Source: Chlorokybus atmophyticus (Eukaryota > Plantae > Mesostigma and Chlorokybus algae). From it: a stretch of 64,000 nt of DNA. The position numbers were made by a program, and so were the translations under genes. The DNA lies in NCBI GenBank assembly GCA_009103225.1, contig RHPI01003422.1, positions 9,379 through 73,378 on the forward strand. Direction: 5' to 3'. Below, piece by piece: positions 13,194 through 53,740 of this stretch. The notes below the pieces were generated by a model, which made no database searches, had not been told where the DNA came from, and was given only the letters and a program-made list of their open reading frames with translations. Positions within the stretch are counted from its first letter, which is position 1. The number at the start of each line of letters is the position of its first letter.

Positions 13194-15257
<2,064 letters not shown>

Positions 15258-23059: not shown

Positions 23060-24088
23060 ATGGAGGATGCTCGCATGGAAAAGCTTCAAGCTGCCATCTT
23101 AGCATTAAGAGAAGAGCTTCATCACACGCAAGCGGCGGCACAAGCACAACGCGAGGCGTATGAGCATGCGATGGCGCGTGTACAAATTCCCATGGCATAA
23201 AGCTCGCGCGTGCATGTGAAGGTGCCAAAGCCCAAGCCATTCAGGGGTTAACGTGATGGAGATGCAGTGGATGAATGGATTTTTCAAGTATCGTCTTGGT
23301 TGAAGCTCACGGAGGTGCCCACGCATCTGCACGTGGAGGTTGCAGCGACATTGCTTGAAGGTGCAGCACTTGTGTGGTGGAGGCATCGATGTACGCGTGT
23401 TGCAAACGGGTTGGCGCTACCATTGACCACCATGGAAGAGTTGGCACTGGAGGTCAGGCATCAATTTGTTCCCGTTGAGAGCGTGAAGGCCGCACGCGAC
23501 AAACTTGCAGCCCTTGTGCAAATGGGGTCGGTGATGGCGTACACGGCCGCGTTTCAGCGATTGGTGATGTCCATACCCAATATGACCGAGGAGGAGCAGC
23601 TGGACAGGTATACACGTGGGTTAAAACCTTTGGGGCGTAAAAAAGTGGAGCTACGGGACCCGAAGACACTCGCGGAGGCTATACGCATCGCGGAGCGTCT
23701 CGACGCGTTGTACTTCAAGTCCACCACAAGAAACACTGACTGGAGGCAAATGCATGGTGATCAGCCCCGGGGAGGCTTTCAACAAGCATGGAGACGAGGT
23801 GGACCAAGTTTAGCACTTGCCAATGGAGGTGGAGCTGACTCTGGGCCTGCACCAATGGAGGTGGGTGCCATACACACGCATGGAAGTGAGGCGAAGCACG
23901 GCGGACGTGGTGAAAGAGGTAAAGGTGTGCGCAAGTGTTATGCATGTGGGTCGACGGAGCATTTGGCGTACGGATGCCCCAAACGAAGCACGCAAAGGCC
24001 AACACCGGATGGCAACCCTCGCCGTGATCGTCGCGTCAACACCATGGAGCAAAATGGCGTGGAGCAGGAAAACGACTTCCCCCAGTAG
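23060..24088 (+). pseudogene. gag: Retrotransposon gag with two premature TAA stops
   Basis: Single frame from ATG 23060 with TAA at 23198 and 23249; retrotransposon gag segment (W..VPVESVKAARDKLAALVQ); CYACGSTEHLAYGC = CX2CX4HX4C. Confidence 0.9.
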
Positions 24089-24202
24089 GTGAGGAGGCTA
24101 CTGCTGGGGATAGGAAGGAGCCTTATGCACGGACGGATGCTGTGACATTTCCATTAAAGAAGCAAGAGGAGATGGCTTTAAACGCGCCAATGGTGGTGAG
24201 TT

Positions 24203-26089
24203 ATGCAAACGAGGAGACAACAAAACTTACTATACTTTGGGCTTCGAGCACACATTTGCGATGATCAAAGACGATGGAGAGAGTGTAAGCTCATGATTGA
24301 TAGCGGTGCCAACAGCAACTTCATGAGTATTGATATCGCGCGGCGTTACGGTTGGCTTTCGTTATTACCAAGAGGTGAAGTGAAGCTCGCTGATGGAGAG
24401 CCACCCTCTGGAGGTGATGGCGCTGCGTTTATGACCAAAGAGTTGTGCGTTCGCATTGGAAAGATGAAGGAGAACATGCGATTTTGCTGCATCACCCTAC
24501 GGAACGGGTTTGACGGGATATTGGGACTACCGTGGCTATGGCAACATAATCCATCCATCAATTGGAGGAAGCGCGCGCTCACCATCGAACGAAATGGTGG
24601 AGAATCCATTCAAGCTGCGTCGGACGTCATCGAGGCGCGGCACGCACAATTTGGTGGTACGATAATTGCCCAGATCTGTTATATGCAATTGAGGAAGTTA
24701 TTGTCTTTACGAAGGCAAAGGCTGCATGGTTGTGCGTGGTGCGCGAAAACACTGCAAAGTCAGCACCAGAGCTGAGTGACGATGTTAAGACGGCTACGAT
24801 GGACCCCGAGGTGTGTAAACTTGTTAAAGAATACCAAGATATCATGGTGGACGGACTTCCATCTGGTCTTCCACCTCCACGGAGCGTAGACCACCATGTG
24901 GAGCTGATTGAGGGCGTGCACAAGCCACCGTATCGACCCGTATACAAGTTGTCACCTTTGGAGCTGGAAGAGGCCGAGAGGTAGGTAGCGGACTTGCTGA
25001 AAAGAGGCTACATCAGGCCTAGTAAGTCCCCCTATGGTGCACCTATTTTGTTTGTACGAAAGAAGAACGGAAGCTTGCGCATGTGCGTCGACTACCGAGC
25101 TCTCAACAACATCACAAAGAGGAATTGCTTTCCACTCCCACATATCGACGAGTTGCTGGAGCAATTGCAAGGTGCGCAGTACTTCACAACACTTGATCTT
25201 GCTGGAGGTTATCACCAAATCCGCATCGCCCCCGAGGATGTGGCGAAAACAGCTTTTAATACACGTTATGGGCACTACGAGTGGTTGGTCATGTCCTTCG
25301 GACTTACGAACGCACCGACAACATTTCAAATGCTTATGAACAGCGTTTTTGCTGACTTGATTGGTAAGGGAATCCTCGTGTACCTCGACGACATTTTTGT
25401 GTACGCGAAAACGAAGGAGCACGTGGAACTCCTATGGCGCGTGTTGCAGCGTTTGCGCGAACACAAGTTGTACGCCCAGCTACAAAAGTGCAAATTCTTG
25501 CTTCGAGAGGTGGAGTACCTAGGCCACATCGTGTCGCATGAAGGCATCAAGCCGGACCCCAACAAAGTGCAGGTGGTGCGCGAGTGGACTTCCTCAACCA
25601 ACGTAAATGAGGTGATGTTCTTTTTAGGCCTTGCGGGGTATTATCGCAAGTTTATCATGGGGTTTTCGCGCATAGCTGCTCCCTTGACTGCCCTACTCAA
25701 GAAGGGAAAGCCTCGGAGCTGGTCAGCAACAGAGGAACATGCATTTGCTACGTTAAAGAAGGCGCTGACGGAGGCACTAGTCCTGGCTCACCCCGACATG
25801 GAAAAGACATCTATTCTGGCTTGCCACACGTCCGACACAGCCGTAGGAGCTGTTTTGCAGCAAGACCATGGCAACGGCCTTCAACCAGTAGCATTCTTCA
25901 GCAAGAAGAAAGATGAGTGGTGCGGAGCTGAATTACCCCGTGCACGAGAAGGAACTCTTAGCGCAAGTCATGGCGCTACGACAATGGCGTTGTTTTTTGG
26001 AAGGCAAAAAGTTCGTGCTTGAGACAGATTACTCTCCACTGAGGTACTTACAAACACAACCTCATCTAAGTCGCAGACAAGCTCGATGG
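24203..26089 (+). pseudogene. pol: Retrotransposon pol (protease, RT, partial RNase H), disrupted
   Basis: LMIDSGANSNF protease; GYIRPSKSPYGAPILFVRKKNGSLRMCVDYRALN and VYLDDIFV RT; ELNYPVHEKELLA..LETDYSPLRYL..RQARW RNase H. TAG at 24982 and at least two frameshifts. Confidence 0.93.
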
Positions 26090-26725: not shown

Positions 26726-28006
26726 TGTTATGTAAACAATATATGTGTGTATATACACGTGTCAAGTTGTAGCATGCTAGTTTGCGTGTGTAAAGTAAAT
26801 GGCACATAAACATCATGACAACAGAGGTAATTGGGACAAATTTTGGGCGCTCAGAGCAATACTGGTTATAATTTAATTTATTAAACTACTTACGCATGTA
26901 TTTTTTGTGCACATCGTGATCAAGCTTTTATAATACCGCTCAAAAGCTGACCATGCTACATGTACATTTGAAAACCGATATTGGTGTATCAAATTCAACC
27001 AATGCTTATGACAACGTGCATCTGTCATGTAAAATTGTGGACAACATATTGTAATTAGTCGAATGCCGTCACAAGGTCTTGTGATGAATTATAAAATGAC
27101 CTGGTCAATCCGCATTCTCGCACATCATCCGCTTACGTATGCATGTTAATAAAAGTTGTGAGAGTAACCATCTCATGCACATGAATAGGGATTATGCGCG
27201 TATCCATTGCAAATTTCAAAGACTGAATGTAATGGCTACATTGCGATTAATATGCAGTATGCAATCAAATTTTGCAGCCTAGAAGTGATGTCATAACGAT
27301 TTCACGTACACATGATGTATATGTGTCAACGTGTATCACTTTGTATTAGCTTGTGTACAATGATTAATATGACATACACCGGCGAAACGAGATGGAAAAC
27401 CCAACGAGTCGCATGTGCAGAGCTGAAAATATATATCACCGCATACAAAAATACACAGTTTACGTAATATACATGTCGCATCACATACAGATAATGCCAT
27501 TGTCTCGTAAAATTCATGAAACATTTACAACATGCACAAACCATATCACGTCATGCATTGACACGTGTTAATAGTGGTATTTAATAGCAAGATATTTAAT
27601 ATACATGTTACGATGTTCAATTTAAGCTGACACATACATGGTTCACGGTATATGCGTAATCATACATTCAACTCATGTGTAAAAGCTACAAGACGTTCAT
27701 ATATGTATGATATATAATATGATGTGCGTTACAAGCAATCTGCGACAACAAACCATGTCATTCAGCCAAAGCAAGTAAACATGATATAAATATGACAAAC
27801 ATCATCTGCACGATGACAGGGATATTAGACCTTCGCTCACACAAGCATCACTCGGTGAACGGCCCTTTCAACCACCAATAGTCTATTGTTGATGCAGCAC
27901 AGAGCTCATAGCCAAACCTTGTACATTTGTCGAAATAGGGTGTTGTGCATTGGGGAATAGAGGTCACCCGCTGTACACTCCCATCGACCGTCCGTGACCG
28001 CTCTTT

Positions 28007-28014
28007 TAGGGTTT
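28007..28014. promoter_or_regulatory. Telo-box (TAGGGTTT) upstream of NOP58
   Basis: Exact AAACCCTA reverse complement about 120 nt before the ATG. Confidence 0.55.
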
Positions 28015-28134
28015 GCTGACTGCGGCGGCGGGGGCGGCGGCGGCGGCGGCCGTGGTGGTGGCGGCCGAGGAGGACAGAAGCGACGAGGAACAGGAAGACG
28101 TGGCGAGCTGCTTGGGCGAGGGCCTGTATGCGTC

Positions 28135-30266
28135 ATGCTGCTGCTGTTTGAAACCCCTGCGGGGTTCGCCTTGTTCAAGGTCCTCAATGAGGGCAAGGTG
28201 TCGGCGTCGGCCGACCTGGCGGCGGACTTTGAGGACCCGGACAAGGCGGCGAAGCTGGTGAAGCTGAAGGCCATGGAGGTGTTCAAGGACACAGCCGAAG
28301 CCCTCACCGCCGCTGCCGCGCTCGTTGAATCCAAGCTGCCCAAGAACCTCCGCAAGTTCCTCAAGAAGCACGCCTCCGACGACACCCTGGCCCTCGCCGA
28401 CCCCAAACTGGGCAACCTGGTAAGGCCCAACCAATATAACACATGCAATGCGCTCACTATCACCATAAGTAACCAATCTGTTCAATTGCCATCCTTCTCA
28501 TCTTGCATCGCGGCTCTGGTCATGCTATTGGTGCCAATGTCCCTGTCTGTGTTGTCTTTTCTGGCAGTTGGGTTGCTGTCCACTGCGGTATTGGTGGACG
28601 CCTCTAATGCACATATGCGTGCTTGCACAATCGGTCGCTCTCTGTTCATGTGCGTGTGCACGCGTGTATCTGCGTCTCATGGCTTCTTACACACTGGGGT
28701 CACTTTCGGTCGTGGGGAGTAGGCATCATCTACGGTGGGTCATTCATAATACCATCACCACTTGATGAATTAAGGCTTACACACAATGCTCGTCAATGCT
28801 GCAGGTGAAGGAGAAGTTGGGCATCCAATGCGTGCACAGCGCGGGGGTGATGGAGCTGATGCGAGGGGTGCGGTCTCAGCTGGAATCGCTGCTGTCGGGC
28901 TTGTTGGGTGGGGGTACGGCCAACATGGCGCTGGGTCTCTCGCACTCTCTGTCTCGCTACAAGCTTAAGTTCTCTTCGGACAAGGTGGACACGATGGTGG
29001 TGCAGGCCATCGGCCTCCTGGACGACCTGGACAAGGAGCTCAACACGTACGCCATGCGCACGCGCGAATGGTATGGGTGGCATTTCCCCGAGCTTGGCAA
29101 GATTGTGGCAGACAACATTCAGTACGCGAAGGCTGTACGCCTCATGCGCACGCGCGACCGTGCCGCAGATGTGGACTTTTCTGAGTCCGGCCTCGCCGAG
29201 GAGGTGGAGGCTCAACTCAAGGAGGCCGCGCAGGTGTCGATGGGGACGGAAGTCAGCGAGGAGGACATGTTGTCCATCCTCGCCTTGTGTGAGCAAGTAA
29301 TCTCTCTATCAGAGTACCGCACGCAGCTGTACGACTACCTCAAATCCCGCATGGCGGCGATAGCACCCAACTTGACTGTGTTGGTGGGTGAGCTCGTAGG
29401 CGCGCGCTTGATCGCACACGCGGGCTCGCTGTTGTCGTTGGCGAAGCAACCCGCCTCGACGGTGCAGATCCTCGGGGCGGAGAAGGCGTTGTTTCGCGCG
29501 CTGAAGACGAAGCACGAGACGCCCAAGTACGGGCTGATCTACCACGCGAGTCTCATCGGTCAGTCGGCACCAAAGCTCAAGGGCAAGATCTCGCGTGTAC
29601 TCGCGGCCAAGTGCGCCCTCTCCATACGCGTGGACGCCCTCGGGGACGCCCCCGACGCCTCTGTCGGCATTGAGAACCGCGCCAAGGTGGAGGCACGCCT
29701 TCGACAACTTGAGGGACGTGCACTCCCCAAACCTGCCGCAGGCAACATTGTTGTTACAAAGCCAACAACACCTCAGGTCAAGCTCGAGGCCGCGCCCAAG
29801 GCGTATAACCCCGCCACGGACGCCACCGTCGGCACTGACCCGGCCGCCGATAAGGTCAAGAAGGAGAAGAAGGACAAGAAGAAGAAGGCCAAGCAGGTGG
29901 AGGAGCCTGCTGAGGTCAAGGAGGAGGAGGAGGAGGAGGAGGAGGCTGCAGAGGAGCCACTGAAGAAAAAGAAGAAGAAGAAGCAAGCAGAGGAGGAGCC
30001 CGCTGCAGTTTCTGAGGTGTGTTGTGTGTTGCATTGCTCCATTTGGGTCTATTTGTGCCATTATACATAACCAGACAGGGTTTGACTCGCTTGTGGTTGT
30101 GTAGGAGGAGCCTGCGAAAAAAAAGAAGAAGGCCCGGTACTTTGAAGAGGATGGGGTGGCTGCGGAGGAGAATGGTGCCGCTGTGAAGAGCAAGAAGCAG
30201 AAAGTTGCCAACAACGGGGCCGAGGCAGCGCCCGAGAAGAAAAGGAAGAAAAAGGACAAGCAGTAG
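28135..30266 (+). CDS. NOP58: Nucleolar protein 58 (box C/D snoRNP)
   Basis: Exons 28135-28419, 28805-30016, 30105-30266. [16 protein letters not shown]; [27 protein letters not shown] (NOP58- rather than NOP56-type); Nop domain [12 protein letters not shown]; KKE-rich tail. Confidence 0.95.
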
Positions 30267-36144: not shown

Positions 36145-39100
36145 TCACTCTACCACAAGTCCATCAAACACCCCGAGCGCAACAGTTCTCGCGGCCCCCG
36201 CGCTCACTAAAACCCCCGCGTACACAACACCCCCGAATGGTGGCAACGCGATGTTGTTGTACGTTGTGTATGTGGCCCCACCATCAGTTGAATAGGAGGC
36301 AGTAAAGGCTCCAACCCCATCATAGCGCAGGCGGAGAAGTACGTTGATGGGGCTGAGGGCCACTTTGGGGGTGGTCGGGTGCGTGACAGCGATGGCACCG
36401 GTAGCTTCCCGAGCCACCAGCGCCATCGCACCCGCTGTAGTGAGGGAGAAGTACACATTTCTTGCGGCGGGGTCTGTTGGGCCTGAAGGGGAGGAGCGTA
36501 TGGCCACACCAAAGGTGGATGTGGAAATTGCGCTTGTCACGCTTTTCACCCTCATCGTAACGGTGAGACCGCCGATGCCGCTGACCTCACGCTGCGTGTA
36601 CATGAAGTGGCCCTCGTCGTTGTTGCCCTTCACGCCGAGACCGCTGCCGGCAACGCGGTACACGCCACTGTCAAGGCGCGCACCACCTGCAGACAACACG
36701 TGAGTCAACCATTGAATGAGGGAGAGCACGTACGTGTGCGCATACTTGTGTTTGTGTTGATGCAAGTGCAAGTGTGTGTCTGTGTGCGTGCAACATTACA
36801 CAAAAGTGCGCCACCATGATGCTTGCATGCTAGCACTTGCCTGGGAAGAATGCAGTGTTGGGCGGGGAGGCGATAAGATCCGCGGATGCAAAGCCCGATG
36901 GGAGGGCGCCGGGACCAGACACGGGAGTTTGCAGAGTCATGAAGGCCATATACGCGTAAGGAGGCGTAGACGGCTGCGTCACAGAGTGCTGTGTGCTGCC
37001 TCCGTCGGACCACCCTGCGTGAACGTGCATGCGCATCATATACACATGTGTACATGCGTGGATGCTTGTGTGTATAGAGACATGCACTTACCGGCATACA
37101 CGTATGTGATGCCAGAGATAATGACCGAGTCCGGTGCTCCAATCTGTCAAGATGGCAGTTAAGTCTTGCACGCACGCACATTGGACTCTCCGAATTGATG
37201 CGACATATGATTAGTGGTCTACCTGATTGACAGAGCCTACTGCTGCGCTCTGATAGATCTTTCCTGTGGAGCTTGCTGACCCTCCATTGAAGCTCACCCT
37301 ACGAGCAAGTACCAGCATTACACCCACACATTCACACACACGCACACACGCACACGCGTTACCTGAATGCCACCGGCGAGCTGAACACGCGTAAAGGCAG
37401 CGTCGGCGGTGGCGGCGAGGGCGGTGGCGTCACGGCATCGCTGGTGAGTACCGGTGGAGCAAACTTCAACAGGAAGTTGCGACCCAACACGCCCGCCACC
37501 GCCGCCACACCTGCGAGCTAAGATCGGTACACATGCACACGAACACGCACGTTGAGCAACTTATCCTCTTTACACTCCTCTTACCAGCCAAGCATGGGCC
37601 TGGAGAGCAGGTGAAAGGCACTGTCATGGTCGTAAGTGTGATGAAAGTGGTGCCTTGACGGGAGTAGGACGCCGTCACGCGGCCACCACTAATGCTCACG
37701 CGCACCGATACAGGAAACTGCGTGCCCAAAAATTAGTGTCAACATCAACACTACCGTCTGTGTGGCATGTTGTCTGCGCGTGCGCGTGTGTATGCACAGC
37801 TCCTCGCCTACCTGTGTGTTGGCGATTGACCCCGTCACCGTGGTGGTCCCGCCGTTGCTCGATCGGTACGACATGGCCACATTCTTGCGCGTGGCGTACA
37901 CGAACACGTTGGCCACATTGCTGACACTTCCGCCACCCGCGCGTATCATCACGCCGGCAGTGGACTGGACAGCCACGGACGCTGATGTGGCTGCGCTGAA
38001 TGATGTTAAGCGGACAGTCAACTCGATTGTTGAAGCACTCAACGCCGTACGCATGAAGTAGAACTGGTCCGCGGTGCTGCACACAACACAGTAAGTTGTG
38101 TGTGTGTATGCTGACGCTGTTATGCACCTGCACGAGCGCTCGTCCACACGAACAAGTCCACATGTATAGTCACATGCGCACATGCACACAGAGACACGAA
38201 CCCGTACACACATTCACCTGCTTATGTCGTATCCTCCCGCTGTCATCGCACACTCGGCTGCCCCACACGCCACCCCCCCGAGCAGATAATTCTTATGCGC
38301 CGCGACCCCAACATCTTCCGCCACATACCCACCACCCGCCGGCACACTCCCACCCACAATACTATAACTCGCATAGATAGTACTTCCCGCCCGCACAACC
38401 ACATCGTGAGCCCGCAACCCCGCATCACTCCACGCGGCAAATGAGTACACAACACCCGCATATGACACAGTTGAGGGTGCGGACACTCTCAATAGCGAAC
38501 CCGCCGTAGCCGACACAACGACAACACCCGTGGATGCGTCGGCGAGTGATGTACCGGCAACCACAGGCGCGGGCACGGGCCAACTGCGTATGGTCATTGT
38601 TGATGTTGTTGTTGGTGGCGCGGGTGGGGGAGGAGAAGGTGGTGAAGGTGGGGGTGGAGAAGGTGGTGAGGGTGGAGGAGGTGAGGGTGGAGGTGTGGGT
38701 GAAGGTGGCGAGGGTGGAGGAGGTGAGGGTGGAGGTGTGGGTGAAGGTGGTGAGGGTGGTGGAGGTGAAGGTGGTGAAGGTGGTGGTGGGGAGGAAGTGA
38801 CTGCTGCCGTGTTGTATGTGGCTTTGACTGACAGTATGCGCGGCGTGCGTGACGGGTCTGTGGTGCTGAGACGGATGCGGTATTGGAGGGTGCGGGATGT
38901 GATGTCGATCGCCGCTGCGTGCGGTGAGAGAGCGTGAGCGTGTTGTTCTTATCATACCCATACCTCAACATCACAACGTGTCGTTTGCCTCTCGCGTACC
39001 AGTGAAACTTGTTGATGAAGGGGTGAATGTGCCGGCTGTCACGAAGGCCGCGCCCGCGTCATCACCGCTTCTGCAGGTACAAGATTTTACGTGATTGGGA

Positions 39101-40832
39101 ACACAGATGCACACTACGCACGCCACACCCACACTCACCTAACATCGAGTGCCGCCGCCGTATTGGCCGGCATCCTCACTGCCACCTCCATCCCCACCCA
39201 CCTCACCACCCCATTCGCCTCCCACCCCCTCGCCACATACCCACACTCCATCTTCGTCACAGGCATCACCCACACCCACTCCACGCTCAACGTGGCCGCA
39301 GGATTACTTGTATACGAACTCATCGCGCCGTACGTGGCGGGTGGGCTCCACGCCGCGACGTGTGTGTCCACATCGTCGAGGGAGTAGGTGACAACATTAC
39401 TATTCTCTATGCGGTAGGAGTGGTAGGTGGTGAGGTAGGGTGTGCATGACGTGTCGGAACAGGCGGGGAAGTTGTTCTCGCTGGAGGGGGCGCCGGCACC
39501 AAGAGTGCGGTAAAACAAAGCTGCGCACGGGAGGGTGCGTGTAAGTGTACGTGTGTGTGTGTGTGCGCGCGCGGGAGCGTGCGCTGAATGAGTGTGCAAG
39601 TGCGCGTGTATTTGTGTTTGTGCCTGCGTGTGTGTGTGTGCATGGGCGTGATGGAAGCACCTTGTTAGATGTGTTGAATGCGTGTGTTCACCAGTAGTTG
39701 TGTATGGGACGTACTGTTTGTGGTGGAGCCAGTGGAGAAGATGGCCCAATAATTGTTGAATGGGCTTTGGTTGACCACATCCGTGAGGCCAACATGTTGG
39801 TACGCGCCAGGTGAGAACCTCGCAGAGACCTCCACCGCAGACCCAACACTCTCCAACGGGTCCCGCGTATACAACGCCGAGTTGTAAAGCTCCACAGCAC
39901 CTCCACTCACATGCGCGGTTGAAATGCCATCCCAACTCTTCACCGATAGAAATGTTGGCACGACGCCGTCGACATCAAACTCCGCCGCGTACGTGAGAGG
40001 TAACCCAACGTATCCGCCACCCGCCGCACCGTGGTCGAACACGTAACAATCACCACTACCTGATAGAAAGCTCGCAAACGACGAGTCCAACATGTTGCCT
40101 GTGACAACTTGTTCAAGTGGAGGTGGAGGAGGTGGTGGAGACATGTTGGCACCCCCCGGTGAGTGTGTCACGAAGGACCATGTGTACACGCCGTCCAACG
40201 TGCCGCCACCGTTGGCTCCCGTAAGACCTCCGCCCACACTAACAGTGTAGTGTGTGCCTTCATCCAACACATTGTTGGGTTGTATGGTCACAGCTTGCTT
40301 CACGCTGTCGAGTGTGGTGACAATTGGTATGTCGGCATCCGTGTCGCGGTTCTTCAGCGACACAACGAGGGTGAGAGGGTTGACGGGTTCGGAAAATAGT
40401 GCAATAATGTTGGGTGAAGAGGGTGAGACGTCTGTCTCATCCGCTGCGGGTAGCGTTATCACAACTGATAGTGGTATTGTTGTGTCCGATGACGCTATGA
40501 GTACGTCCACTTGCTCGACGACGGGTGTGGACACGCCATCTTGTGAGGGTGTCAACACCACTTGGAAGTAGATGTTGTCTCCCGTGTGGTTGATCGAGCC
40601 GTCCTCGGGTACAGCCTCCCACGCCATGTTGGGATCGTAACGCACGTTGAGTGTGACCGTGCCGGAGGACGTGGCGAGAGTGCGAGCGTGTATGCCCGTG
40701 AATGTGACGGGTGTGCGGAAAGACAATGACGAGGAGGTGTAAGAGCATGAGGACGGGTAAGGACCCGAGCGGAGAAAGGAGAGAGAGAGAGTAGAGGAGG
40801 TGTCCCGGTCCAAGGCGGACAAACCCTGCACA

Positions 40833-40868
<36 letters not shown>

Positions 40869-43800
40869 TAAACAAATGACTGTCAACTCACTATTGCCCA
40901 CGCGCTCGAGGAGTCGCCAACAGCGCCCGTTGTGACATTCTGCACGCCATCGGCGGCGTACTTTGAGCTTGACGCGTCCCACAGGATCTGATACCGATGG
41001 TAGCTGATGGCACAGACAATGCATCAGACACACACATAGACACACAGACACACAACTCGCTCTCCTCTCACCTGCCAAATGCGTCGCTGCCAGCGAGTCG
41101 TACATTGTTGGCATTTGCACGCGCATAGAGTACATCTCCTCCTCCTCCAAACGGAGTACCAATCAGACTCCATAGCGCCACATTGAATGGGTCTCCATTG
41201 CCATCCAGCGAAGTTAACCCAACATACTGCCCTTGCGTGGTAGACACACCACTATACGTGGCGCCGAAGTCCACTACGCGTGGCCGCGTGTACACGCCTT
41301 TTGTCGACACGGCCGAGAGCGCGAGGGAGAGCTTCCCACCCTCTATTGCACACTTTGCTCCCGAGCTTTCCCAGATTCTATACTTCAACACAACAGGTCC
41401 ACTTCCTTCCCACCCGAGAGACGTGTCGAGAGTGAAGTCTCCCTCAGTTGTGATGGTGGACTTCATGTTGGGTTGTTGGTTGAATGATAGAGAGAGGTAA
41501 GGTCTCAGCATGAACTCGCCGTCACCCTCGAGAGACACATACCCACATGTTGGGGTGGAGAAGCTACCCGCTGCGATGAAAGCCTCGGGTGTGGTGAGTG
41601 TGAGTGTGTAGGGTGGCCTCACGCTTGTCATGAAGGATACGGGTGGACCCGAGGGTAACGAGGCCGTGTTGGAGTGTGTGTCGGCCACGGTGACTCTAAG
41701 GTAGTATGTTGTAAAGGGTAAAAGAGACGTGAGAGGGAATGTGTGTGTGGTAGAGAAAGTGGTGTCAGTAGCAGCTGGCGTGAGAGCGTCAGAAGATGTC
41801 CCCAACAGTAGTGTGGCATTAGAAGCTTCATCGGTTGAGAAAGTCACCGAAGCACTGTAAGCTTGCACATCGGTCACGGTGATATCTGCATAATGGGAGT
41901 GTGAGACAGAGAGTATGTAACATACACATTCACACGCACACGTACCGTCCGTGATGACAGGTGCTGCGGTGTCGACACCATAAGTGGCCACGTAGCTCCC
42001 GGCCAACGCGGGGAACATGATGTAGTCCACGCCGCTCACCGTCTTACGCGTGCGCCCGCCAACAACTGACCCACCATTCCTGGTCAAACCAATCAAGTCC
42101 CCTGTCGGCACACCTAAGGCACGAGAACAACATGTCAACAAACCCAACATGTCGACACAACATAGCACACAACCACTCACTTGCGGGGAGAAGCGCACGC
42201 AGCAATGTTGGGCTTATCAGGCTCAGGTCCGCCACATCACCAGGTTGTACATCAAACTCCAAGGTACTCACACCCGCATCCCAACGCAAGTTGGCGAATG
42301 TGGACCCGCCGCGCATATCAACCCACATCAACACTTGTCTCGCTGACATCACCGGCGCATTATATCTCTTTGCCGACGCTAATATCGGGTCCACTTCCCC
42401 TCCTTTCCCCGCATCCGAGTGTATATTCGCAACAAACACCCCAACAAACCCGCGCGTGACAGCGTTATCAAGCAACGCATCAACAAACGACGGGTACACT
42501 TGGTTGGATTCATCCGTCATTTGCGTCACGGCTTGGTAGATATCCAGCATGGTCCCGTCGATATCGGCGAAGCGCATAGGGAGAGCTGAACCGGTGAATA
42601 AACCAGGGATGGAGGAGTCCCATGCGGTGGAAGAGTAGAGAGAACGAGGAGGCCAGTAGTAGTAGTTGGTGTCAAGACGGACGCCGTTCTCGAGCTCGAC
42701 CAAAGCCTGGAGTGGGTGGGTGGGTGGGTGGGTGGGTGTGCATGTGCGTGTGCGCGTGCGCGTGTGCGCGCGTGCGCATGTTGTTGTTAACAATACTTGC
42801 TAAGATGCTATCTGTGCGTGTTTCGTGTGTGATGTGGGATGCAAGCCTAAACAACACCTCCTCCTCTCTCTGACTTACTGCTGAGTCCCAGTCGCTCCAC
42901 GCGATGCAGTGCGTGCGTTCGGTCTGCGGGCCCGGCAGCGTCGGGTACTTGGCCGCGAAAGCACCGAACTGGTCTTGGAAGAAGGCTCGCAGACCTGAGA
43001 ATGCAATGCGAGTCAGAGTGTGGTTGAGTTGTGTACTGGGATGGCAAGCAAGCGTGCGTACTGTTGGGTGTCCAGTTGGCGCAGTTGGTGTTGATGTGCA
43101 TGGCCACTTCGAACCCTTGCGCGTGGTACTGCTGCGCCTGCGAGTCTGCCCAGTGTGGTAATGAGTGACGTGCGCATGTGCATGTACATGCGAAACAATG
43201 CGATGGTATGCACGTGTACGCATCCGTGTATGCGTGTGCGCATTGGTGTCCACGTCCGTGTGCGCGCATGTACGGGTGTGTACGGGTTGTGCGCGCGCAC
43301 ACACCACAAAGTGTCCTCACTCGTAAGTGCCGAGTCTGGATACAGGTACGCGGTCGCCCTCGCGCACTCCAGCATCTCCACCCTACACCCGCTATCCCTC
43401 GCCCCCTTGAGCTGCTCAAACCGGCTCGCATCCAACCCCCCTTCCCCCCCGTGGTTGTCGGCCGTCATCACCACCACCGCGTCCGCGCCGCCGGGGAGGT
43501 ACCAAAAACGAGGGAGAGATGGGAGGGGTGAGGTAGGGGAGGAACGGAGAAGGAAGGAGAGGAGGGAGGTTAACAGACGAAGCTGCTCGTCGGCCTGAGA
43601 GAGAGAGAGAGAGAGAGAGATGTATCAGGTTTTGAGTGAGTTGGAGTTGGTTTACAACACACTCAGATGCGTCGTGCGCGCATACGCATGCGCATGCAAA
43701 AACGAGTGCTCGCGCGCGCGGGTGTGTTGCCACAAAACAACAGAACAGCCCTACTTGGGGTACAGCGATGTTGTCCTGGTCCACCCACTGCGTCTGCGCG

Positions 43801-46800
43801 TCTCTGTTGATGAAGAGGTCGTCGGCGCGAATAGGGTCGATGCCGTCGTTCTCGGTGCCGGCGGCCGCGGGGTTGCCTTGACGCGTGTACACGACGCTCT
43901 GGGCCAGGTCGTAGGCCCACACAGCCACGCTGCCCTGGTAGTACACCGCCGGCCTGGAGAGAAAAGGACACACATGTCAAAAGAGAATCACGAGTTACGC
44001 GCATACGCACCTGTGCATTGACACCCGCACGCATGTGCACAAACGCATCAGCAGACTGTCTAATGTGTGTGTGCGTGTGCGCGTGGCATGCACACACGCA
44101 CACATACGTGCGACTCACCCTAAGTTGGCGCCTGCTGCAGTGGCCCTCAACGCCGCCACCTCGGTCGCTCCCGTGGGGTTGCTCAACACCAACCTATCAG
44201 CACTCCCATGAAACTGCATCCCGCGGTCACCAAACACACCAAATCCCGGCTGCGTTGGATCTATACACAACAAGAGTCAGATACACATACGCATGTTATC
44301 AAACATCACACACACCCAACACTTGCCTTGGTTGTGAACGAGCATGTACCCCTCCGACACTTGCATTGCGCGCGGGTTGAGCCCGAGCAGGGAGTTCATG
44401 TTGGGCGTGTCTTGTGGGCGCATTGCCACGAGAGGGTGGCCGTCCGACACCCACTGTGCCAGAATGCCGACCTGAGAGAGAGAGAGAGGGGGAGAGGGGG
44501 AGCATGTTGGGTTGTCGTGCCCGTGTGAACATGAGTGTGGTGTGGGAGGAGATTAGGTAGTCACTTACCTGAGGGGTGGGCACTGCAATGGCGCCGAGGA
44601 GGATTAGCCAGTAGCTGCTGAGTGCAGAGTAGGTAGTAATCTGGACACATAGTATGCATCAATCCCATGCACGGTGCTTGTGCAACGTGTTATGTTTGTA
44701 ATCAGTGCATGCGTGCGCGTGCTCAAGTTTGTGTTTGTGTATTTTTGTGCGTGTGCGGCATGCAGGTATGTCTCACCGTGCTGATATCTTTGACATCGAA
44801 GTAATTCAACCCTTCTGCTCGTAATATCTCCGCATAGTAGTACGAAAACCTGGCAAAGTTGGCCACTTCAGCACACATGCGCATACAGGTCAATTCGCAC
44901 ATGCCATATGCACACTGATGTGTGCAGAGCACAAATGCTCACACGGGCACGCACGCATTGACCCAACATACTTGTTGCTGGCGCTGGCAAGAACGAGCAC
45001 GGGTCCCCCAGGACCCTCATTGGGATTGAACTGGGCAGCAGCCGGGCCCACATCAATCGTCACCAAGCTGGGTGTGTCCTCAACATTGAGTGAGTCATCA
45101 ACCGCCCTCGCCATGATCGTGTACGAGCCCGCGGGGAGTGACACGGGACCAAAGGCCCACTTTGTCAAGGTATTGTCTGAAGGTATGGTTGGACGCCAAC
45201 TATTGCCGTTGTCTAAGGACACTTCGACCATGCCGACAACGCCCGCGCCCGCATCATTTCCAGTGATGGTGATAGTGAAAGGAGTGTTGGCATGCAGTGG
45301 GTCCGTGCTCGCGGGGGCTGTAATGGTAGATGTTGGCAATGTTGTGTCGGTGGTAGCGAGGGCCCGTACAAGACCTGAGGGTAGGGTTGCAGGCTGCACG
45401 GACATGTCGGCGAGGAGGTTGATTGTAAACTGTTGGATGGAAGGGTCTGTATCTGAAGACCCTCTGTCATGATTGGAGTCCAAGCCCCAGCTCCATTGCA
45501 CGGTCCCGGCCCCGAACACGATGGCGGGTCCCTTCTTGTACACAACAAGGCGATGCGTGGCGGATCCACCCTCAGCATACGTGGACCCGAAGTCCGTTAA
45601 GACCTGCACTCCCGTCACGCTCGTGCCCGACAGCCTAACAGACCCTGAGGGCCTGGTGGCGTCGTCAGGGTCTGAGTCCCACTCGTAACCAATCAGATCA
45701 TCTGTGACAATGGTGATGTCGCCGGTGTCTCCCGCAGCTACTGCACCCACGGGGGTGTCACGCCAGAAGCGCAAGCGGCGGAGGGACTCGGGAACCGTCA
45801 TGCGCGTGGACCCGCTGTTGACTCTGAAGAATTGACCAGTTAAGGTGCTCTCGGGTCGGCCACCGCCACGCGCCAACGCGTCAGCACGAGGGTCACGCCA
45901 CGTACCCGTCCAGGGACCAGTCCTGCCCTCAATGGGCAGACTCGGGTCCTCGGGTTCAGGACCTGACCATTAATCATTGTGAGAGTGTGGGTGAATTGTG
46001 TGACAACAGCATGACGACTATTACTTACTCTCCAGAGTGCCGCTGATGGCGTGTGTCTCTTTGAAGCAAATGAGGGTCTGGTGGTCAGGGGACCAGTACG
46101 TCTTCCAAAAGACCTCGTTACCACTGCATCAGAGACCCAAGGAACGTGAGTAACAGGTTGAACAACAACAACAACAACAACAACAACTACACGACGATGC
46201 GTGTTGACTTCACAGCAATAGAGACCGCAAGTGAGTCGCGTATGCACATGCATGCACGAGAGAAAAGTGCACACACACGCACTCGCACAAGCACGCACGC
46301 ACCAAAACACGACACAACACACCACTCTCCTCCTCACCTAAAGAACGCGATATGCACTCCTTCATCCCTCGCCGCCTCCACATTCGCTCTCTGGTCCCCC
46401 GACCAATACTCGTCATGTCCCACAGAGAAGTACGCCTTATGCTGCTTCATCACCGATACTGCAATAGAGCGGTCCGCGTCGCCACCGGACCAGTAGCTGA
46501 CGCTGTAACCGGCACCCTCCAGGAAACGAACCATCGGGTACTCGGAGTTGAAGACGAAGTCCTCGTTAGAAGTGTAGCGGGTCGTGAACGGACGCGCGTA
46601 AGAGACCTGTGGGCATAGTGAAATGTTGTTATTGGTCTAATACCACGGTTGTGTTAGATATAGTATTCTGTGCGACATGGTTAGATCGTACTCGTATATA
46701 TTGATTGCGCACCCCCACACATGCTCACGCATGCTAGCGCATGCACATGTGCATGCGCATGCAATGTGCACATGATGCAGTGCCCTCACCTTGTATGCGC

Positions 46801-48360
46801 GAGGCGAGGTGTATAGGCTGTACCCGCCGTAACTGTTGTACGCCTGCCAGGTGCTGTCCCAACACAACAGCACCACGCATCAAACCCCACTCCCACACCC
46901 CACCCCACCCCACCCACCCCCACCCACATCTCCACTTACGTGTCAGAGGTCTGGAACAGTATGTCGGCCGTGCTCGCGTCATCCCGCACGACAAAGAAGG
47001 CGTGGCTGGCTGCGTTGGCTCCCGTTTTCAGAAGAGCGAAGTAGATGCCTGAGAGTTGAGTGGAAGGGACCGACCACGTGGCGGCAACGGACCAAGAGGA
47101 GCAGTCCACAGAGAGGTACACAGGGTCCACGAGGCAGGCGGCCTAAGACAATGACAAGTGGGTGGGTGGATGGCTGGGTGGATGGGTGCGTGCATGCGTG
47201 TGTGAACATGAACGTGTGCGTGCGTTCCAGTGTGTTCACGTTTGCATACACGTGTGCGTGCGCGTGTGTCTCGCTATGTGCATGCGTGCATGCGCACGTA
47301 TGCATTTCCATGCTTGCAAGGAGAGGTTGCACTCGTGTGTGAGCGTGTGTGCGTGTTACTTGTCACTCCGTCAGATATGTCACCTGCGGGTTGACCACGC
47401 GGGAGCCCAACGACGCGACGCGGCGTGCCCCATTGCCGCCGTAATACCCCATTCGATACACGTCGATCGCAACAGGCGTGTTGGGAGCCGACGTGCTGAC
47501 CTGGAACCACATACACAAGCAAGTTGATGAGTAAACTGTATCTGATACAGCTTGTGAGATTTCTGCATTGACAAGGTGGGTTGCTCACCCGAAACTCGAC
47601 GAGTGAGCCGGGCGCCACGCTGAACGGCGTTGCAAAGGCTTCGGGTGTGGTGCCGCTGCTCTCCCACTCAGACGAACTGGCCACACATGGGAAAGAGGTG
47701 ATAAGCGAGGTAAGTGCGTGCACATATGTGGGTCCGCATACGTCTTAGTGTTGGTGCGCGCAAGTGCGAGTGCACCTGCGTGTGCATGCGTGTGTGCGTG
47801 TGTGCATGTGTGGGTGGGTGATTGAATAGGTGGGTGGGTGGGCGTGCATACGTGTCTGCGTGTGCGTGTGTGCGTGGCACATGCAGTAATGTGAGTTCAC
47901 TCACGGTTGGCCCTGCAGGCAGTTCTCGCGCACGATGTCATTGGCGTCAGGGGGAAGCGGAGAGCAGTAAGCTGCCGCAGCGACAGAGTGTGAGCCACCA
48001 GAGAAACAAACTGAACAGGATGATGAGTCTCGCAAGCATGGACTGGATACTAGCGCTGACTCAGTCTAGTACAACCCCCCGCTGTACGCACAGGGTTATA
48101 CAGGTATGTCGACTTGTGCTGTTGAAGTGTTCCACGTCCCACATATGACACATGAGCTCATGTGAACCCGCACCTGGAATTGGCGCTGCGACTGCTTCAG
48201 CCTTAGGAAGGGCGAGGCAAGCAGCGGTCAGCAACACCGCCAGTGCCAGCATGCGTAGCAATCTCCAAAAAGGGGAGGAGGAGGAAGAGGAGGAGGAGGA
48301 GGACATGTTGCAAGGCCTCGCCGCCGCCGCCGCCGCCGCCGCCATCATCCCATGGCGCAT
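36145..48360 (-). CDS. Very large secreted multidomain protein: DMFase large-subunit-like domain + Ig-like + deacetylase-like + FN3/Ig-like + SbsA-type Ig + SP-rich linkers + two ConA-like domains
   Basis: About 30 exons splice in phase. Signal peptide MLALAVLLTAACLALPKAEA; DIVRENCLQGQPSSEW; IDVYRMGYYGGNGARRV; FVVRDD..DILFQTSDTTWQAYNSYGGYSLY; VGHDEYWSGDQR; IGYEWD; VFGAGTVQWSWGLD; YYAEILRAEGLNYF; VVVMTADNH; RTHCIAWSDW; RLDTNYYYWP; ALFSEPVNP..WSFVT; ADQFYFM; TGA at 36145. Confidence 0.85.
38620..38800 (-). repeat. Extensin/HRGP-like (SPP)n coding tract with an internal 39-bp duplication
   Basis: Translates as SSPPPPSPPSPPPPSPPSPTPPPSPPPPSPPSPTPPPSPPPPSPPSP...; GGT/GGA-rich on the + strand. Confidence 0.85.
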
Positions 48361-52760: not shown

Positions 52761-53740
52761 GTACGCATGTCAACCGACACATATTGCTTGCTTTGAGAAT
52801 GATAAGAGCAACAGACTCGCACTCACGCTCTCACCACATGTAGCAGCGATCGACATCACGTCGCGCACCCTCCAACACTCCATCCGTCTCAGCATTACAG
52901 ACCCGACACTGTCCATCAAAGCCACACACAACACGGCACCAATCTCCCTTGCCCCACCACCGTGGTGACCACCATTACCCTCACCACTACCTCCTTCTCC
53001 ACCACCCACTCCTGCCCCGCCTGCGCCAACAACAACAGCAACAACGACCATCCGTAGTTGGCATGTGCCCGCGCCCGTTGTGGCCGGCACGTCCATCACC
53101 GACGCATCCACGGGTGTTATTGTTGTGTCGGCCGCCGCGGGTTCACTAATGAGAGTGTCCGCAAGCTCATCTGTGTCATATGCGGGTGTTGTGTACTCCT
53201 TTGCCGGGTGGTGTGATGTGGGGTTGCGGACTCACAATGTGGTTATGCGTGCGGGGAGTACGAACACGCTGTATGCGAGTTATAGTGTGGGTGGGAGTGT
53301 GTCGGCGGGTGGTTATGTGGCGGGAGATGTTGGGGTCGCGACGCATAAGAACTATCTGCTCAGGGGGGTGGCGTTCGGGGTGACGGAGTGTGCAATGACG
53401 GCAGTAAGCGTGTGCTTGTGCGTGTGCGTATACGTGCAGGTGCGCACCCGTGCGCGCACCCACGTGTCTTTGCACGGGTGTACGTGCGCATGCGCATGCG
53501 CGTGCGCACGTATGACCACACGTGTGGCGTGTCGTTGTGATGCAGGAGATCATGATGGTGGGGCCGCGTACATAGCGTATAACAGCCTCGCTTTGCCGCC
53601 ATTTGGGGGTGTTGTGTATGTGGGAATTTCGATTAGCGCGGGGGCAACGAAGACTGTTGCACTCGGGGTGTTTGATGGACTTGTGGTAGCGTTAAAGAGG
53701 GAGGATGTTGGGCTGTATACTACTTTTGCTTTATAATCTA
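52761..53740 (+). pseudogene. Decayed inverted partial paralog of the C-terminal part of the 36145-48360 gene
   Basis: 52761-53545 matches reverse complement of ~38990-38077 (IDITSRTLQ.., PAPVVAGTS.DASTGV.VVSA.AGSL.RVSA); 53555-53700 matches ~36290-36145 (DGGA.Y..YN..ALPPFGGVVY.G..SAGA..TVALGVFDGLVV). TGA plus frameshift near 52965. Confidence 0.9.

Follow-up and report, generated by a model that had tools for sequence, protein, structure and literature searches.

The enzymes of known structure closest to the gene described here are the large subunit of N,N-dimethylformamidase (DMFase, EC 3.5.1.56) from Paracoccus (PDB 6LVB) and an N-acetyl-(R)-beta-phenylalanine acylase of the Burkholderia type (PDB 8HUY / 8I5A). 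N,N-dimethylformamide (DMF) is of synthetic origin, and it is unlikely to be the substrate in nature. DMFase is a soluble alpha2beta2 heteromer of a 15-kDa small subunit and an 85-kDa three-domain large subunit. Its Fe(III) is ligated by Y399, Y440 and E521, the residues H519, N547 and E657 are essential, and the enzyme is inactive without the small subunit (PMC7686228). Also comparable are YdaL, the N-deacetylase half of heparan sulfate NDST and PelA (PDB 9CGY), in which a GATase1-like subdomain is followed by a CE4-like one and which all act on, or sit in pathways for, N-acetylated amino-sugar polymers; YdaL is part of the ydaJKLMN exopolysaccharide operon (PMC5422440). The nearest proteins overall are giant secreted bacterial proteins annotated as 'N,N-dimethylformamidase beta subunit family domain-containing' or 'DUF4082 domain-containing', for which no tested function was found in the literature. 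Publications mentioning DUF4082 do not address its function, and in the literature dimethylformamidase is linked neither to algae nor to gene transfer. Here we describe a member of this family encoded by Chlorokybus atmophyticus, an alga from one of the earliest-branching streptophyte lineages, in a window of 64,000 nucleotides (the whole stretch of DNA analysed; contig RHPI01003422.1 of assembly GCA_009103225.1, positions 9,379 to 73,378). Our preferred reading, to which we give a probability of roughly 0.6, is that the gene at 36145..48360 on the minus strand is a Chlorokybus nuclear gene derived from a bacterial giant secreted enzyme, adapted to its host, and that its product would act as an extracellular de-N-acylase of amino-sugar polymers.

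The predicted protein begins, after its signal peptide, with the same mature N-terminus as the bacterial giants and then shares with them the succession DMFA2_C, Big_7, module 2, beta region and fn3 (seen in P0011, a metagenome protein, and in proteins from Myxococcaceae, Pirellulales, Actinoplanes, Arthrobacter and Solirubrobacterales). Identity amounted to 49-55% per catalytic module, and Big_5, ConA-like and X beta-sandwich domain types are common to both. Unlike the bacterial proteins, the algal one is interrupted by 31 introns, starts with a predicted eukaryotic signal peptide, lacks DUF4082, contains repeat-encoded Ser-Pro4 (SP4) linkers, sits on a long branch and, compared with the giants examined, carries two extra C-terminal cassettes of a small beta domain and a DUF1349-like domain. 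Pfam was run exon by exon and domain folds were predicted on bacterial homologues, giving the following layout.

36145..48360, minus strand: whole gene, 32 exons, coding sequence of 8,421 nt for 2,806 amino acids (aa), predicted from genomic DNA
47949..48360, minus strand: N-terminal signal-peptide region, aa 1-70 (exon 1 and the start of exon 2)
45346..47948, minus strand: DMFA2_C module (module 1), aa 71-557 (exons 2-9)
45028..45345, minus strand: Big_7 bacterial Ig-like domain, aa 558-663 (exon 9; E 1.4e-5, 26.0 bits against a cut-off of 24.1)
42112..45027, minus strand: module 2, aa 664-1226, 563 aa (exons 9-19), a GATase1-like and then a CE4-like subdomain as predicted
41620..42111, minus strand: small beta region, aa 1227-1281, and fn3 / purple-acid-phosphatase-N-like domain, aa 1282-1370
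40481..41619, minus strand: ConA-like domain 1, aa 1371-1611, and beta-sandwich X1, aa 1612-1705
40166..40480, minus strand: Big_5 (SbsA-type) Ig-like domain, aa 1706-1810 (E 2.2e-14, 54.5 bits against a cut-off of 23.6)
38799..40165, minus strand: Pro7 tract, ConA-like domain 2, aa 1811-2047, and beta-sandwich X2, aa 2048-2150
38613..38798, minus strand: SP-rich linker 1, aa 2151-2212, of SPPPP/SPP repeats
37446..38612, minus strand: cassette 1, a small beta domain with ..YSFAAWSDAG.., aa 2213-2298, and DUF1349-like ConA 3, aa 2299-2498
37365..37445, minus strand: SP-rich linker 2, aa 2499-2525, TPPPSPPPPTLP
36148..37364, minus strand: cassette 2, a small beta domain with ..YVYAGWSDGG.., aa 2526-2604, and DUF1349-like ConA 4, aa 2605-2806

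Much of this layout had been anticipated in the original prediction, made from the letters of the window alone. The signal peptide, the DMFase-like domain, the Ig-like and SbsA-type Ig domains (Big_7 and Big_5, both above cut-off) and the SP-rich tracts were all recovered, as was the complete series of motifs it had listed (ENCLQG..W, YRMGYYGGNGAR, FVVRDD, FQTSDTTWQAYN, GHDEYW, FGAGTVQWSWGLD, YYAEILRAEGLN and LDTNYYYWP). The domain it called deacetylase-like matched no Pfam family, yet the fold of the bacterial homologue matches deacetylases. An in-phase multi-exon gene does fill the interval, with 32 exons in our model in place of the 'about 30' proposed, and the two ConA-like domains it counted became four, two in the middle of the protein and two of DUF1349 type at the C-terminus.

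A three-frame translation of 36145-48360 gave a chain of stop-free, protein-like stretches separated by CA-rich GT...AG stretches, and a single gene is the simplest reading because no gap could hold an intergenic region. The frame of the model runs from the ATG at 48360 to the TGA at 36147-36145 with zero internal stops and all junctions in phase. Boundaries were obtained by spliced protein-to-genome alignment with six bacterial proteins as guides: for exons 3-19 every guide reaching a given junction (up to six) returned the identical boundary, and two of the six gave 41885 as the first base of exon 20. Manual placement of exons 1-2 and 21-32 drew on reading frames, on the splice consensus and on the paralogy between the two C-terminal cassettes. 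All exons lie on the minus strand.

Exons 1-4: 48360-48174, 47971-47905, 47676-47589, 47500-47384
Exons 5-8: 47142-46940, 46853-46790, 46606-46338, 46123-46025
Exons 9-12: 45922-44972, 44849-44777, 44640-44569, 44471-44316
Exons 13-16: 44249-44119, 43953-43755, 43594-43321, 43145-43062
Exons 17-20: 42994-42879, 42706-42181, 42113-41946, 41885-41072
Exons 21-24: 41003-40892, 40825-39715, 39520-39139, 39070-39000
Exons 25-28: 38914-38218, 38076-37812, 37717-37585, 37510-37363
Exons 29-32: 37298-37223, 37143-37092, 37014-36841, 36686-36145 (including the stop TGA at 36147-36145)

The 31 introns measure 60-241 nt (mean 122) and are split 11, 10 and 10 between the phases. Thirty are of GT-AG type, with donors that are mostly GTGAG or GTAAG, and one is of GC-AG type with a classic CAG|GCAAGT donor. 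The donor of intron 31 is ambiguous between the GC at 36840 and a weaker GT 4 nt downstream used with a different acceptor, a choice that would alter 4-5 residues. Many introns of the gene, including 46161-46191 and 40835-40865, are rich in CA/GT- and CACGCA-type microsatellites with long stop-free runs in several frames. A first automatic gene model was misled by them and was dropped: it retained intron sequence, missed one exon and took the wrong frame across an SP tract. Neither protein collection searched held a predicted protein with exon 9, although the neighbouring NOP58 is there, and this absence suggests that the gene is missing or broken in the public Chlorokybus gene set.

Module 1 was recognised by Pfam family PF20254 (DMFA2_C, the DMFase beta-subunit-like C-terminal domain) on five stretches, three of which, each a single exon, exceeded the 27-bit cut-off alone (51.5, 68.6 and 53.1 bits) and cover profile positions 40-96, 149-211 and 262-372. 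It is collinear with the bacterial protein P0008 (54.6% identity across 500 aa, E 1e-173), and over the DMFA2_C and Big_7 region the alga has kept 130 of the 154 columns that are at least 95% conserved in 73 bacterial sequences. The relation to enzymes of known structure is remote in sequence: a direct search of solved structures with a single exon gave no match, and a profile built from seven bacterial DMFA2_C regions reached the N-acetyl-(R)-beta-phenylalanine acylase with E 3e-12 and the DMFase large subunit with E 3.5e-8. An AlphaFold model of the bacterial module-1 domain (pLDDT 91.2) had these same two enzymes as its only specific structural relatives (acylase E 5e-19, DMFase E 2e-18; 1e-17 to 5e-19 by Foldseek over the three PDB entries named above; template modelling (TM) scores 0.50-0.55), the next matches having E-values of 6e-8 or weaker and mostly covering small parts of the model. 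By HMMER alignment via the bacterial profile, the DMFase iron ligands Y399, Y440 and E521 and the essential H519 and N547 all correspond to identical residues in the alga.

46840-46838, minus strand: Y226, the Tyr of TWQAYN, equivalent to DMFase Y399
46813-46811, minus strand: Y235, the last Tyr of GG.SLY, equivalent to DMFase Y440
46417-46415, minus strand: H306, in GHDEYW, equivalent to DMFase H519
46411-46409, minus strand: E308, in GHDEYW, equivalent to DMFase E521
46119-46117, minus strand: N334, in SGNEVFW, equivalent to DMFase N547

Judged from its sequence, module 1 is thus a member of the DMFase / N-acetyl-beta-phenylalanine acylase superfamily in which the predicted metal site of two tyrosines and one glutamate is kept. 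Beyond the catalytic domain the similarity ends: most of the remaining DMFase large subunit is absent, only about 70 residues precede the domain, and the algal protein is multidomain and predicted to be secreted, in contrast to the soluble DMFase heteromer.

Module 2 aligned with P0011 at 49% identity (E 2.7e-160). Of its conserved columns 131 of 149 are identical in the alga and 18 differ, and the five most conserved motifs of the module-2 family are all kept.

43468-43451, minus strand: MTADNH
43104-43090, minus strand: AMHIN
42920-42888, minus strand: ERTHCIAWSDW
42676-42650, minus strand: LDTNYYYWP
42436-42413, minus strand: FVANIHSD

The model of the bacterial segment P0011:905-1445 (pLDDT 89.5, pTM 0.92) has at its N-terminus a GATase1-like domain such as GH42 beta-galactosidases contain, and after it an alpha/beta domain. 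Its fold matched Bacillus subtilis YdaL (E 5.5e-11, residues 7-525), the N-deacetylase half of NDST1-4 (E about 1e-9), PelA (TM 0.42) and insect chitin deacetylases of CE4 (E 5e-7). A polysaccharide de-N-acetylase fold of the YdaL / NDST / PelA type is therefore supported for module 2 at the level of the modelled fold, although identity to these proteins is just 10-12%, no Pfam CE4 match was obtained and the module is here fused to a second amidase. Five Asp and His residues are invariant or nearly so in P0011:905-1445 (D265, H267, H325, H365 and H465); they are borne by MTADNH, AMHIN, ERTHC and IHSD, and none falls in the 18 differing columns. An Asp-to-Asn change in the family motif MTGDDH was considered as inactivating and rejected, because the same position varies among bacteria too. 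In bacteria, module 2 was found in about 25 of 150 representative proteins, on either side of the DMFase-like module. The order of the two is swapped between P0072, P0012 and P0007 on the one hand and P0011 and P0087 on the other, and P0002 has two DMFase-like modules; judging by these proteins, the pairing of the modules is conserved and their arrangement is not.

Relatives were sought in four collections, namely among 1.84 billion representative proteins and 5.8 billion clusters, in the genomes of 185,579 prokaryotic species and in 241 million metagenome records. Over all four, the nearest relatives of exon 9 were 41-56% identical, and every named one was bacterial (Myxococcaceae, CAG0993471.1; Pirellulales, MFO0911984.1; Anaerolineae, Chloroflexota and others). 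The representative proteins yielded 2,304 clusters at E < 1e-3, the best being 50-56% identical. Among prokaryotes, each species being represented by a single genome, relatives are encoded at no fewer than 576 loci, of which the best 80 were 41-52% identical and include Solirubrobacterales, Actinoplanes, Arthrobacter, Acidobacteriota, Burkholderiales, Chloroflexota, Planctomycetota and a Nostocaceae cyanobacterium. The metagenome records, searched with patterns that included window-specific peptides, gave 507 relatives, none more than 52% identical. Over DMFA2_C, Big_7, module 2, beta region and fn3 the alga is collinear with P0011 (1,689 aa) and P0087, and relatives of its ConA, X2 and Big_5 domains were found in other bacterial family members. 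No EukProt or MMETSP source was among the matches listed, though NOP58 of the same alga sits in that collection.

We constructed a maximum-likelihood tree of the DMFA2_C and Big_7 region (74 rows, 73 bacteria and the alga, with no eukaryotic rows besides it; quick search), in which the alga fell inside the bacterial family, within a 15-row set of Pseudomonadota, Chloroflexota and one cyanobacterium (SH-aLRT 98). This set does not single out a donor, because the algal branch is long (0.81 against a median terminal branch of 0.17). Over the same region the alga is 44-54% identical to bacteria, compared with a median of 61% among the bacteria themselves. GC content at third codon positions is 65.6% for the gene, against 60% and 78% for two host neighbours and 71-96% for most bacterial homologues. 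Because introns, ameliorated composition and a long branch coincide with named relatives that are all bacterial, an old transfer from a bacterium into the alga is well supported by these sequence comparisons. The transferred unit probably comprised the enzyme pair and most of the train of beta-sandwich domains, since the domain types up to residue ~2150 occur in bacterial members. In the history we propose, a bacterial gene for a giant multidomain secreted enzyme would have been taken up long ago by C. atmophyticus and would afterwards have gained its 31 spliceosomal introns, a eukaryotic signal-peptide exon in place of the bacterial signal peptide and serine-proline linkers of the type found in green-lineage hydroxyproline-rich glycoproteins (HRGPs), while its C-terminal lectin-like cassette would have been duplicated. 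Among the bacterial giants themselves, the high similarity across phyla (Actinomycetota, Acidobacteriota, Pseudomonadota, Chloroflexota and others, at the median identity given above) and the interleaving of phyla in the tree suggest frequent transfer among soil bacteria as well.

The N-terminus of the protein has an Ala/Ser-rich n-region, a hydrophobic core (LLRMLALAVLLTAACLALP) and a cleavage-like site AEA|VA. Residues 37-51 have the top hydropathy of the entire protein (2.65 over 15 aa) within a strongly hydrophobic segment at 34-52, and the hydropathy scan found no second transmembrane-like segment in the 2,806 aa. Bacterial homologues have their own signal peptide followed by a mature start ..C..P.N.I..EN.LPG..SEWD as in the alga; because the two mature starts match, the secretion signal appears to have been exchanged at its original position for a predicted eukaryotic one. 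Big_7 also occupies the same position in the bacterial homologues, as does the succession of beta region and fn3 after module 2 in P0011 and P0087; the Pur_ac_phosph_N match in this region (E 6e-6, 27.1 bits) is under the cut-off of 30. ConA-like domain 1 is a putative assignment from the motifs HRYQILW and ..LSLSFLR and from similarity to ConA2, and its region showed weak homology (30-39% identity) to segments of bacterial P0030, P0041 and P0122. ConA2 is 33% identical to P0026:2234-2453 (E 1.6e-15) and has a second, weaker match at P0026:1754-1928, where P0026 gives a sub-threshold Glyco_hydro_16 signal. X2 is similar to bacterial P0057, P0030 and P0122, and X1 had no match among the bacterial family members compared.

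The SP tracts (seven SPPPP and one SP7) keep the reading frame and are flanked by good protein sequence. Linker 1 is encoded by a 42-nt tandem repeat of 3.4 copies (89% matches, 38637-38774). SP4 arrays were found in none of 150 bacterial representatives, one of which has a PT linker, and by this comparison the SP linkers arose in the alga. They resemble green-lineage HRGPs (extensins and SPn modules of the Chlamydomonas/Volvox type) in placing Ser-Pro3-4 arrays between globular domains of a signal-peptide protein. They differ in that the algal arrays are only about 60 and 27 residues long, no YXY-type Tyr cross-link motif is visible in the linker sequences and most of the chain is enzyme of a bacterial type; hydroxylation and arabinosylation are putative. 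The two cassettes that follow look like paralogues when read side by side; a self-blastp (SEG filter on, E <= 1e-3) printed no internal repeat. Cassette 2 had no Pfam match. Its exon 32 had no match among proteins of 98-313 aa, and in a protein atlas the nearest clusters of that exon are DUF1349 / GH43_C2 (score 0.95-0.96), which serves as a lead only. An origin of the last 650 residues in the alga is possible.

The domain content points to how such a protein might work. Two amide-hydrolysing modules would be held in one chain with Ig-like, fn3 and ConA-like domains of the kind that position enzymes on glycans. The protein would be secreted and retained in the wall or mucilage through O-glycosylated, proline-rich (hydroxyproline-rich) linkers, and there it may strip amino-sugar polymers of their N-acyl groups, which would be acetyl or possibly formyl or another acyl. 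Such polymers might belong to the matrix of the alga itself or to soil microbes nearby (as exopolysaccharide, chitin or peptidoglycan), and removal of the N-acyl groups would alter their charge, solubility and susceptibility to lysis. The neighbourhood of the bacterial genes is consistent with such substrates. Flanking open reading frames (ORFs) within 9 kb of the best 80 loci were clustered; the clusters that seemed at first to rank highest proved to be shadow ORFs of the family gene and were removed. The recurrent neighbours were DegT/DnrJ aminotransferases (20 of the 80 loci), priming sugar transferases (15), NAD epimerases/dehydratases (13), GFO/IDH/MocA oxidoreductases (13), GT2 enzymes (12) and ABC exporters (10), and at least one of the first five of these, the sugar-pathway genes, was present at 34 loci from seven phyla. 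These genes form a toolkit for N-acylated amino-sugar surface polysaccharides, which is supporting evidence and not proof. More speculatively, and tentatively at best, the bacterial family as a whole might represent unrecognised extracellular dual de-N-acylases that pair a DMFase-type tyrosinate-iron amidase with a PelA/NDST-type deacetylase and edit the N-acyl pattern and charge of amino-sugar exopolysaccharides. Chlorokybus would then have captured the whole machine and tethered it to its wall by HRGP linkers, remodelling or dismantling the matrices of soil bacteria and fungi on its mucilage. If true, this would be a eukaryotic anti-biofilm or phycosphere-control enzyme of bacterial origin.

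Several observations weigh against a de-N-acylase acting on polymers, or limit the model on which it stands. The profile alignment of module 1 to 6LVB stops at residue 555, and the essential E657 lies beyond it. The folds of both modules were modelled on a bacterial homologue of ~50% identity and not on the algal chain. Module 2 belongs to no Pfam family, including Polysacc_deac_1 (PF01522), in scans of the window exons and of P0011:905-1445; TM-scores of the latter to solved deacetylases are just 0.3-0.45, and its Asp and His residues are candidate metal residues on the basis of family conservation. The C-terminal 650 aa have no relative among the bacterial family members examined. Exons 1-2 and 21-32 are a manual reading, one intron requires a GC donor, and splicing, single-transcript status and expression are predictions from genomic DNA. 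The neighbourhood data are bacterial, the loci are phylogenetically non-independent and more than half of them have no sugar-pathway neighbour. No eukaryotic relative turned up, with no eukaryote genome set searched directly, so that a wider spread among algae is possible.

The main rival, which we consider unlikely, is that module 1, and perhaps module 2, cleaves soluble N-substituted amides outside the cell (formamides, N-acetyl amino acids or amines) and so frees nitrogen or carbon, the beta-sandwiches merely serving as anchors. The sole solved relatives do act on DMF and N-acetyl-beta-phenylalanine, and five of five mapped catalytic residues are kept; however, similarity to these enzymes is remote, both in the profile comparison given above and in fold alignment (12-18% identity), and DMFase requires a small subunit, none of which was seen here, although no search aimed at one was made. 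The fusion of the family to a polysaccharide-deacetylase-like module and many glycan-type accessory domains, and the frequent position of the bacterial genes beside polysaccharide synthesis genes, also speak for polymers. It is less probable still that the enzyme modules are dead and the protein serves as a large HRGP-like scaffold, lectin or adhesive wall glycoprotein. Such a role would suit the SP4 linkers, the four ConA-like domains, the long branch and the changed columns (24 of 154 in DMFA2_C and Big_7, 18 of 149 in module 2), but retention of all mapped catalytic residues, all five module-2 motifs and 84-88% of near-invariant columns across 1,150 aa is hard to explain without selection on the enzymes.

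We regard it as similarly improbable that the gene is an unexpressed or decaying relic of an old transfer. That no sequencing run was listed for this DNA, the absence of a predicted protein with exon 9, while NOP58 of the same genome is present, and a degenerate partial copy 4.5 kb away would agree with decay, but the 8.4-kb frame, which spans 31 introns, is intact and free of stops and frameshifts, its splice sites are canonical, its conserved columns are kept, and the nearby fragment (52843-53733), by contrast, already has a stop and deletions. Finally, the absence of eukaryote genome sets from the direct search, and an atlas cluster nearest the C-terminal domain that is mostly eukaryotic, from diatoms, leave a very slight chance that no transfer into the alga took place. 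Bacterial contamination of the assembly was considered and ruled out, because the gene has 31 spliceosomal introns and eukaryotic flanking genes. An ancient vertical gene would require loss in essentially all sampled eukaryotes, while at least 576 bacterial species of many phyla carry the family, the alga nests inside bacterial sequences and eukaryotic sources are lacking among the matches listed. A transferred, host-adapted enzyme acting on amino-sugar polymers thus remains the reading we prefer.

Transfer of genes from bacteria into streptophyte algae is a known phenomenon. The original prediction's bacterial origin by transfer agrees with the named relatives, the introns, the eukaryotic neighbours and the nesting of the alga in the domain tree. 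Its two-enzyme scaffold is borne out by the catalytic residues kept in module 1 and by the de-N-acetylase fold and conserved motifs of module 2, and its view of the SP4 linkers as a host addition by their absence from the 150 bacterial representatives and their 42-nt tandem repeat. The wall or mucilage glycoprotein that it proposed is a putative role. It went too far in speaking of an undescribed system: the gene is a eukaryotic member, with introns, of a bacterial family already recognised though unstudied in function, and an unusually large example of known transfer. As such, it would show a complete 8-kb bacterial surface enzyme taken up and rebuilt as a eukaryotic secreted, presumably glycosylated, protein, and it offers a large, concrete example to those who argue that the lineage which went on to colonise land received extracellular biochemistry from soil bacteria. 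It also draws attention to the bacterial family (at least 576 species, 2,304 sequence clusters), which joins the rare tyrosinate-iron amidase chemistry of DMFase with a PelA/NDST-like deacetylase, often near amino-sugar polysaccharide genes. The module pairing, the sugar-gene neighbourhood and the wide spread together therefore provide a testable function for the whole family.

Elsewhere the window holds several eukaryotic genes, which besides a response-regulator gene are the following.

13855-14583: GAPDH exon
23267-26019, plus strand: Ty3/gypsy element with gag, aspartic protease, reverse transcriptase and RNase H in separate ORFs
27994-30067, plus strand: NOP58 (NOP5NT and Nop domains)

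The NOP58 stretch is 100% identical to the C. atmophyticus EukProt entry jgi/Chlat1/3041/Chrsp208S00235. The alga is subaerial or terrestrial, on soil and stones, and the paper describing its genome does not discuss gene transfer (PMC7027972). About 4.5 kb upstream of the ATG, at 52843-53733 on the plus strand, lies a degenerate, inverted partial copy of the 3' part of the gene. Its start shows the acceptor context of exon 25, and it aligns to aa 2112-2337 with 60% identity overall and 78% over aa 2220-2337; 5 aa are deleted, and its SP linker, greatly reduced in length, contains an in-frame stop. Beyond a CA-rich, intron-like stretch, the final 45 residues of the last exon follow with 76% identity. 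The copy looks like a pseudogene relic of a genomic, not retroposed, duplication that has suffered an internal deletion between ConA domains 3 and 4.

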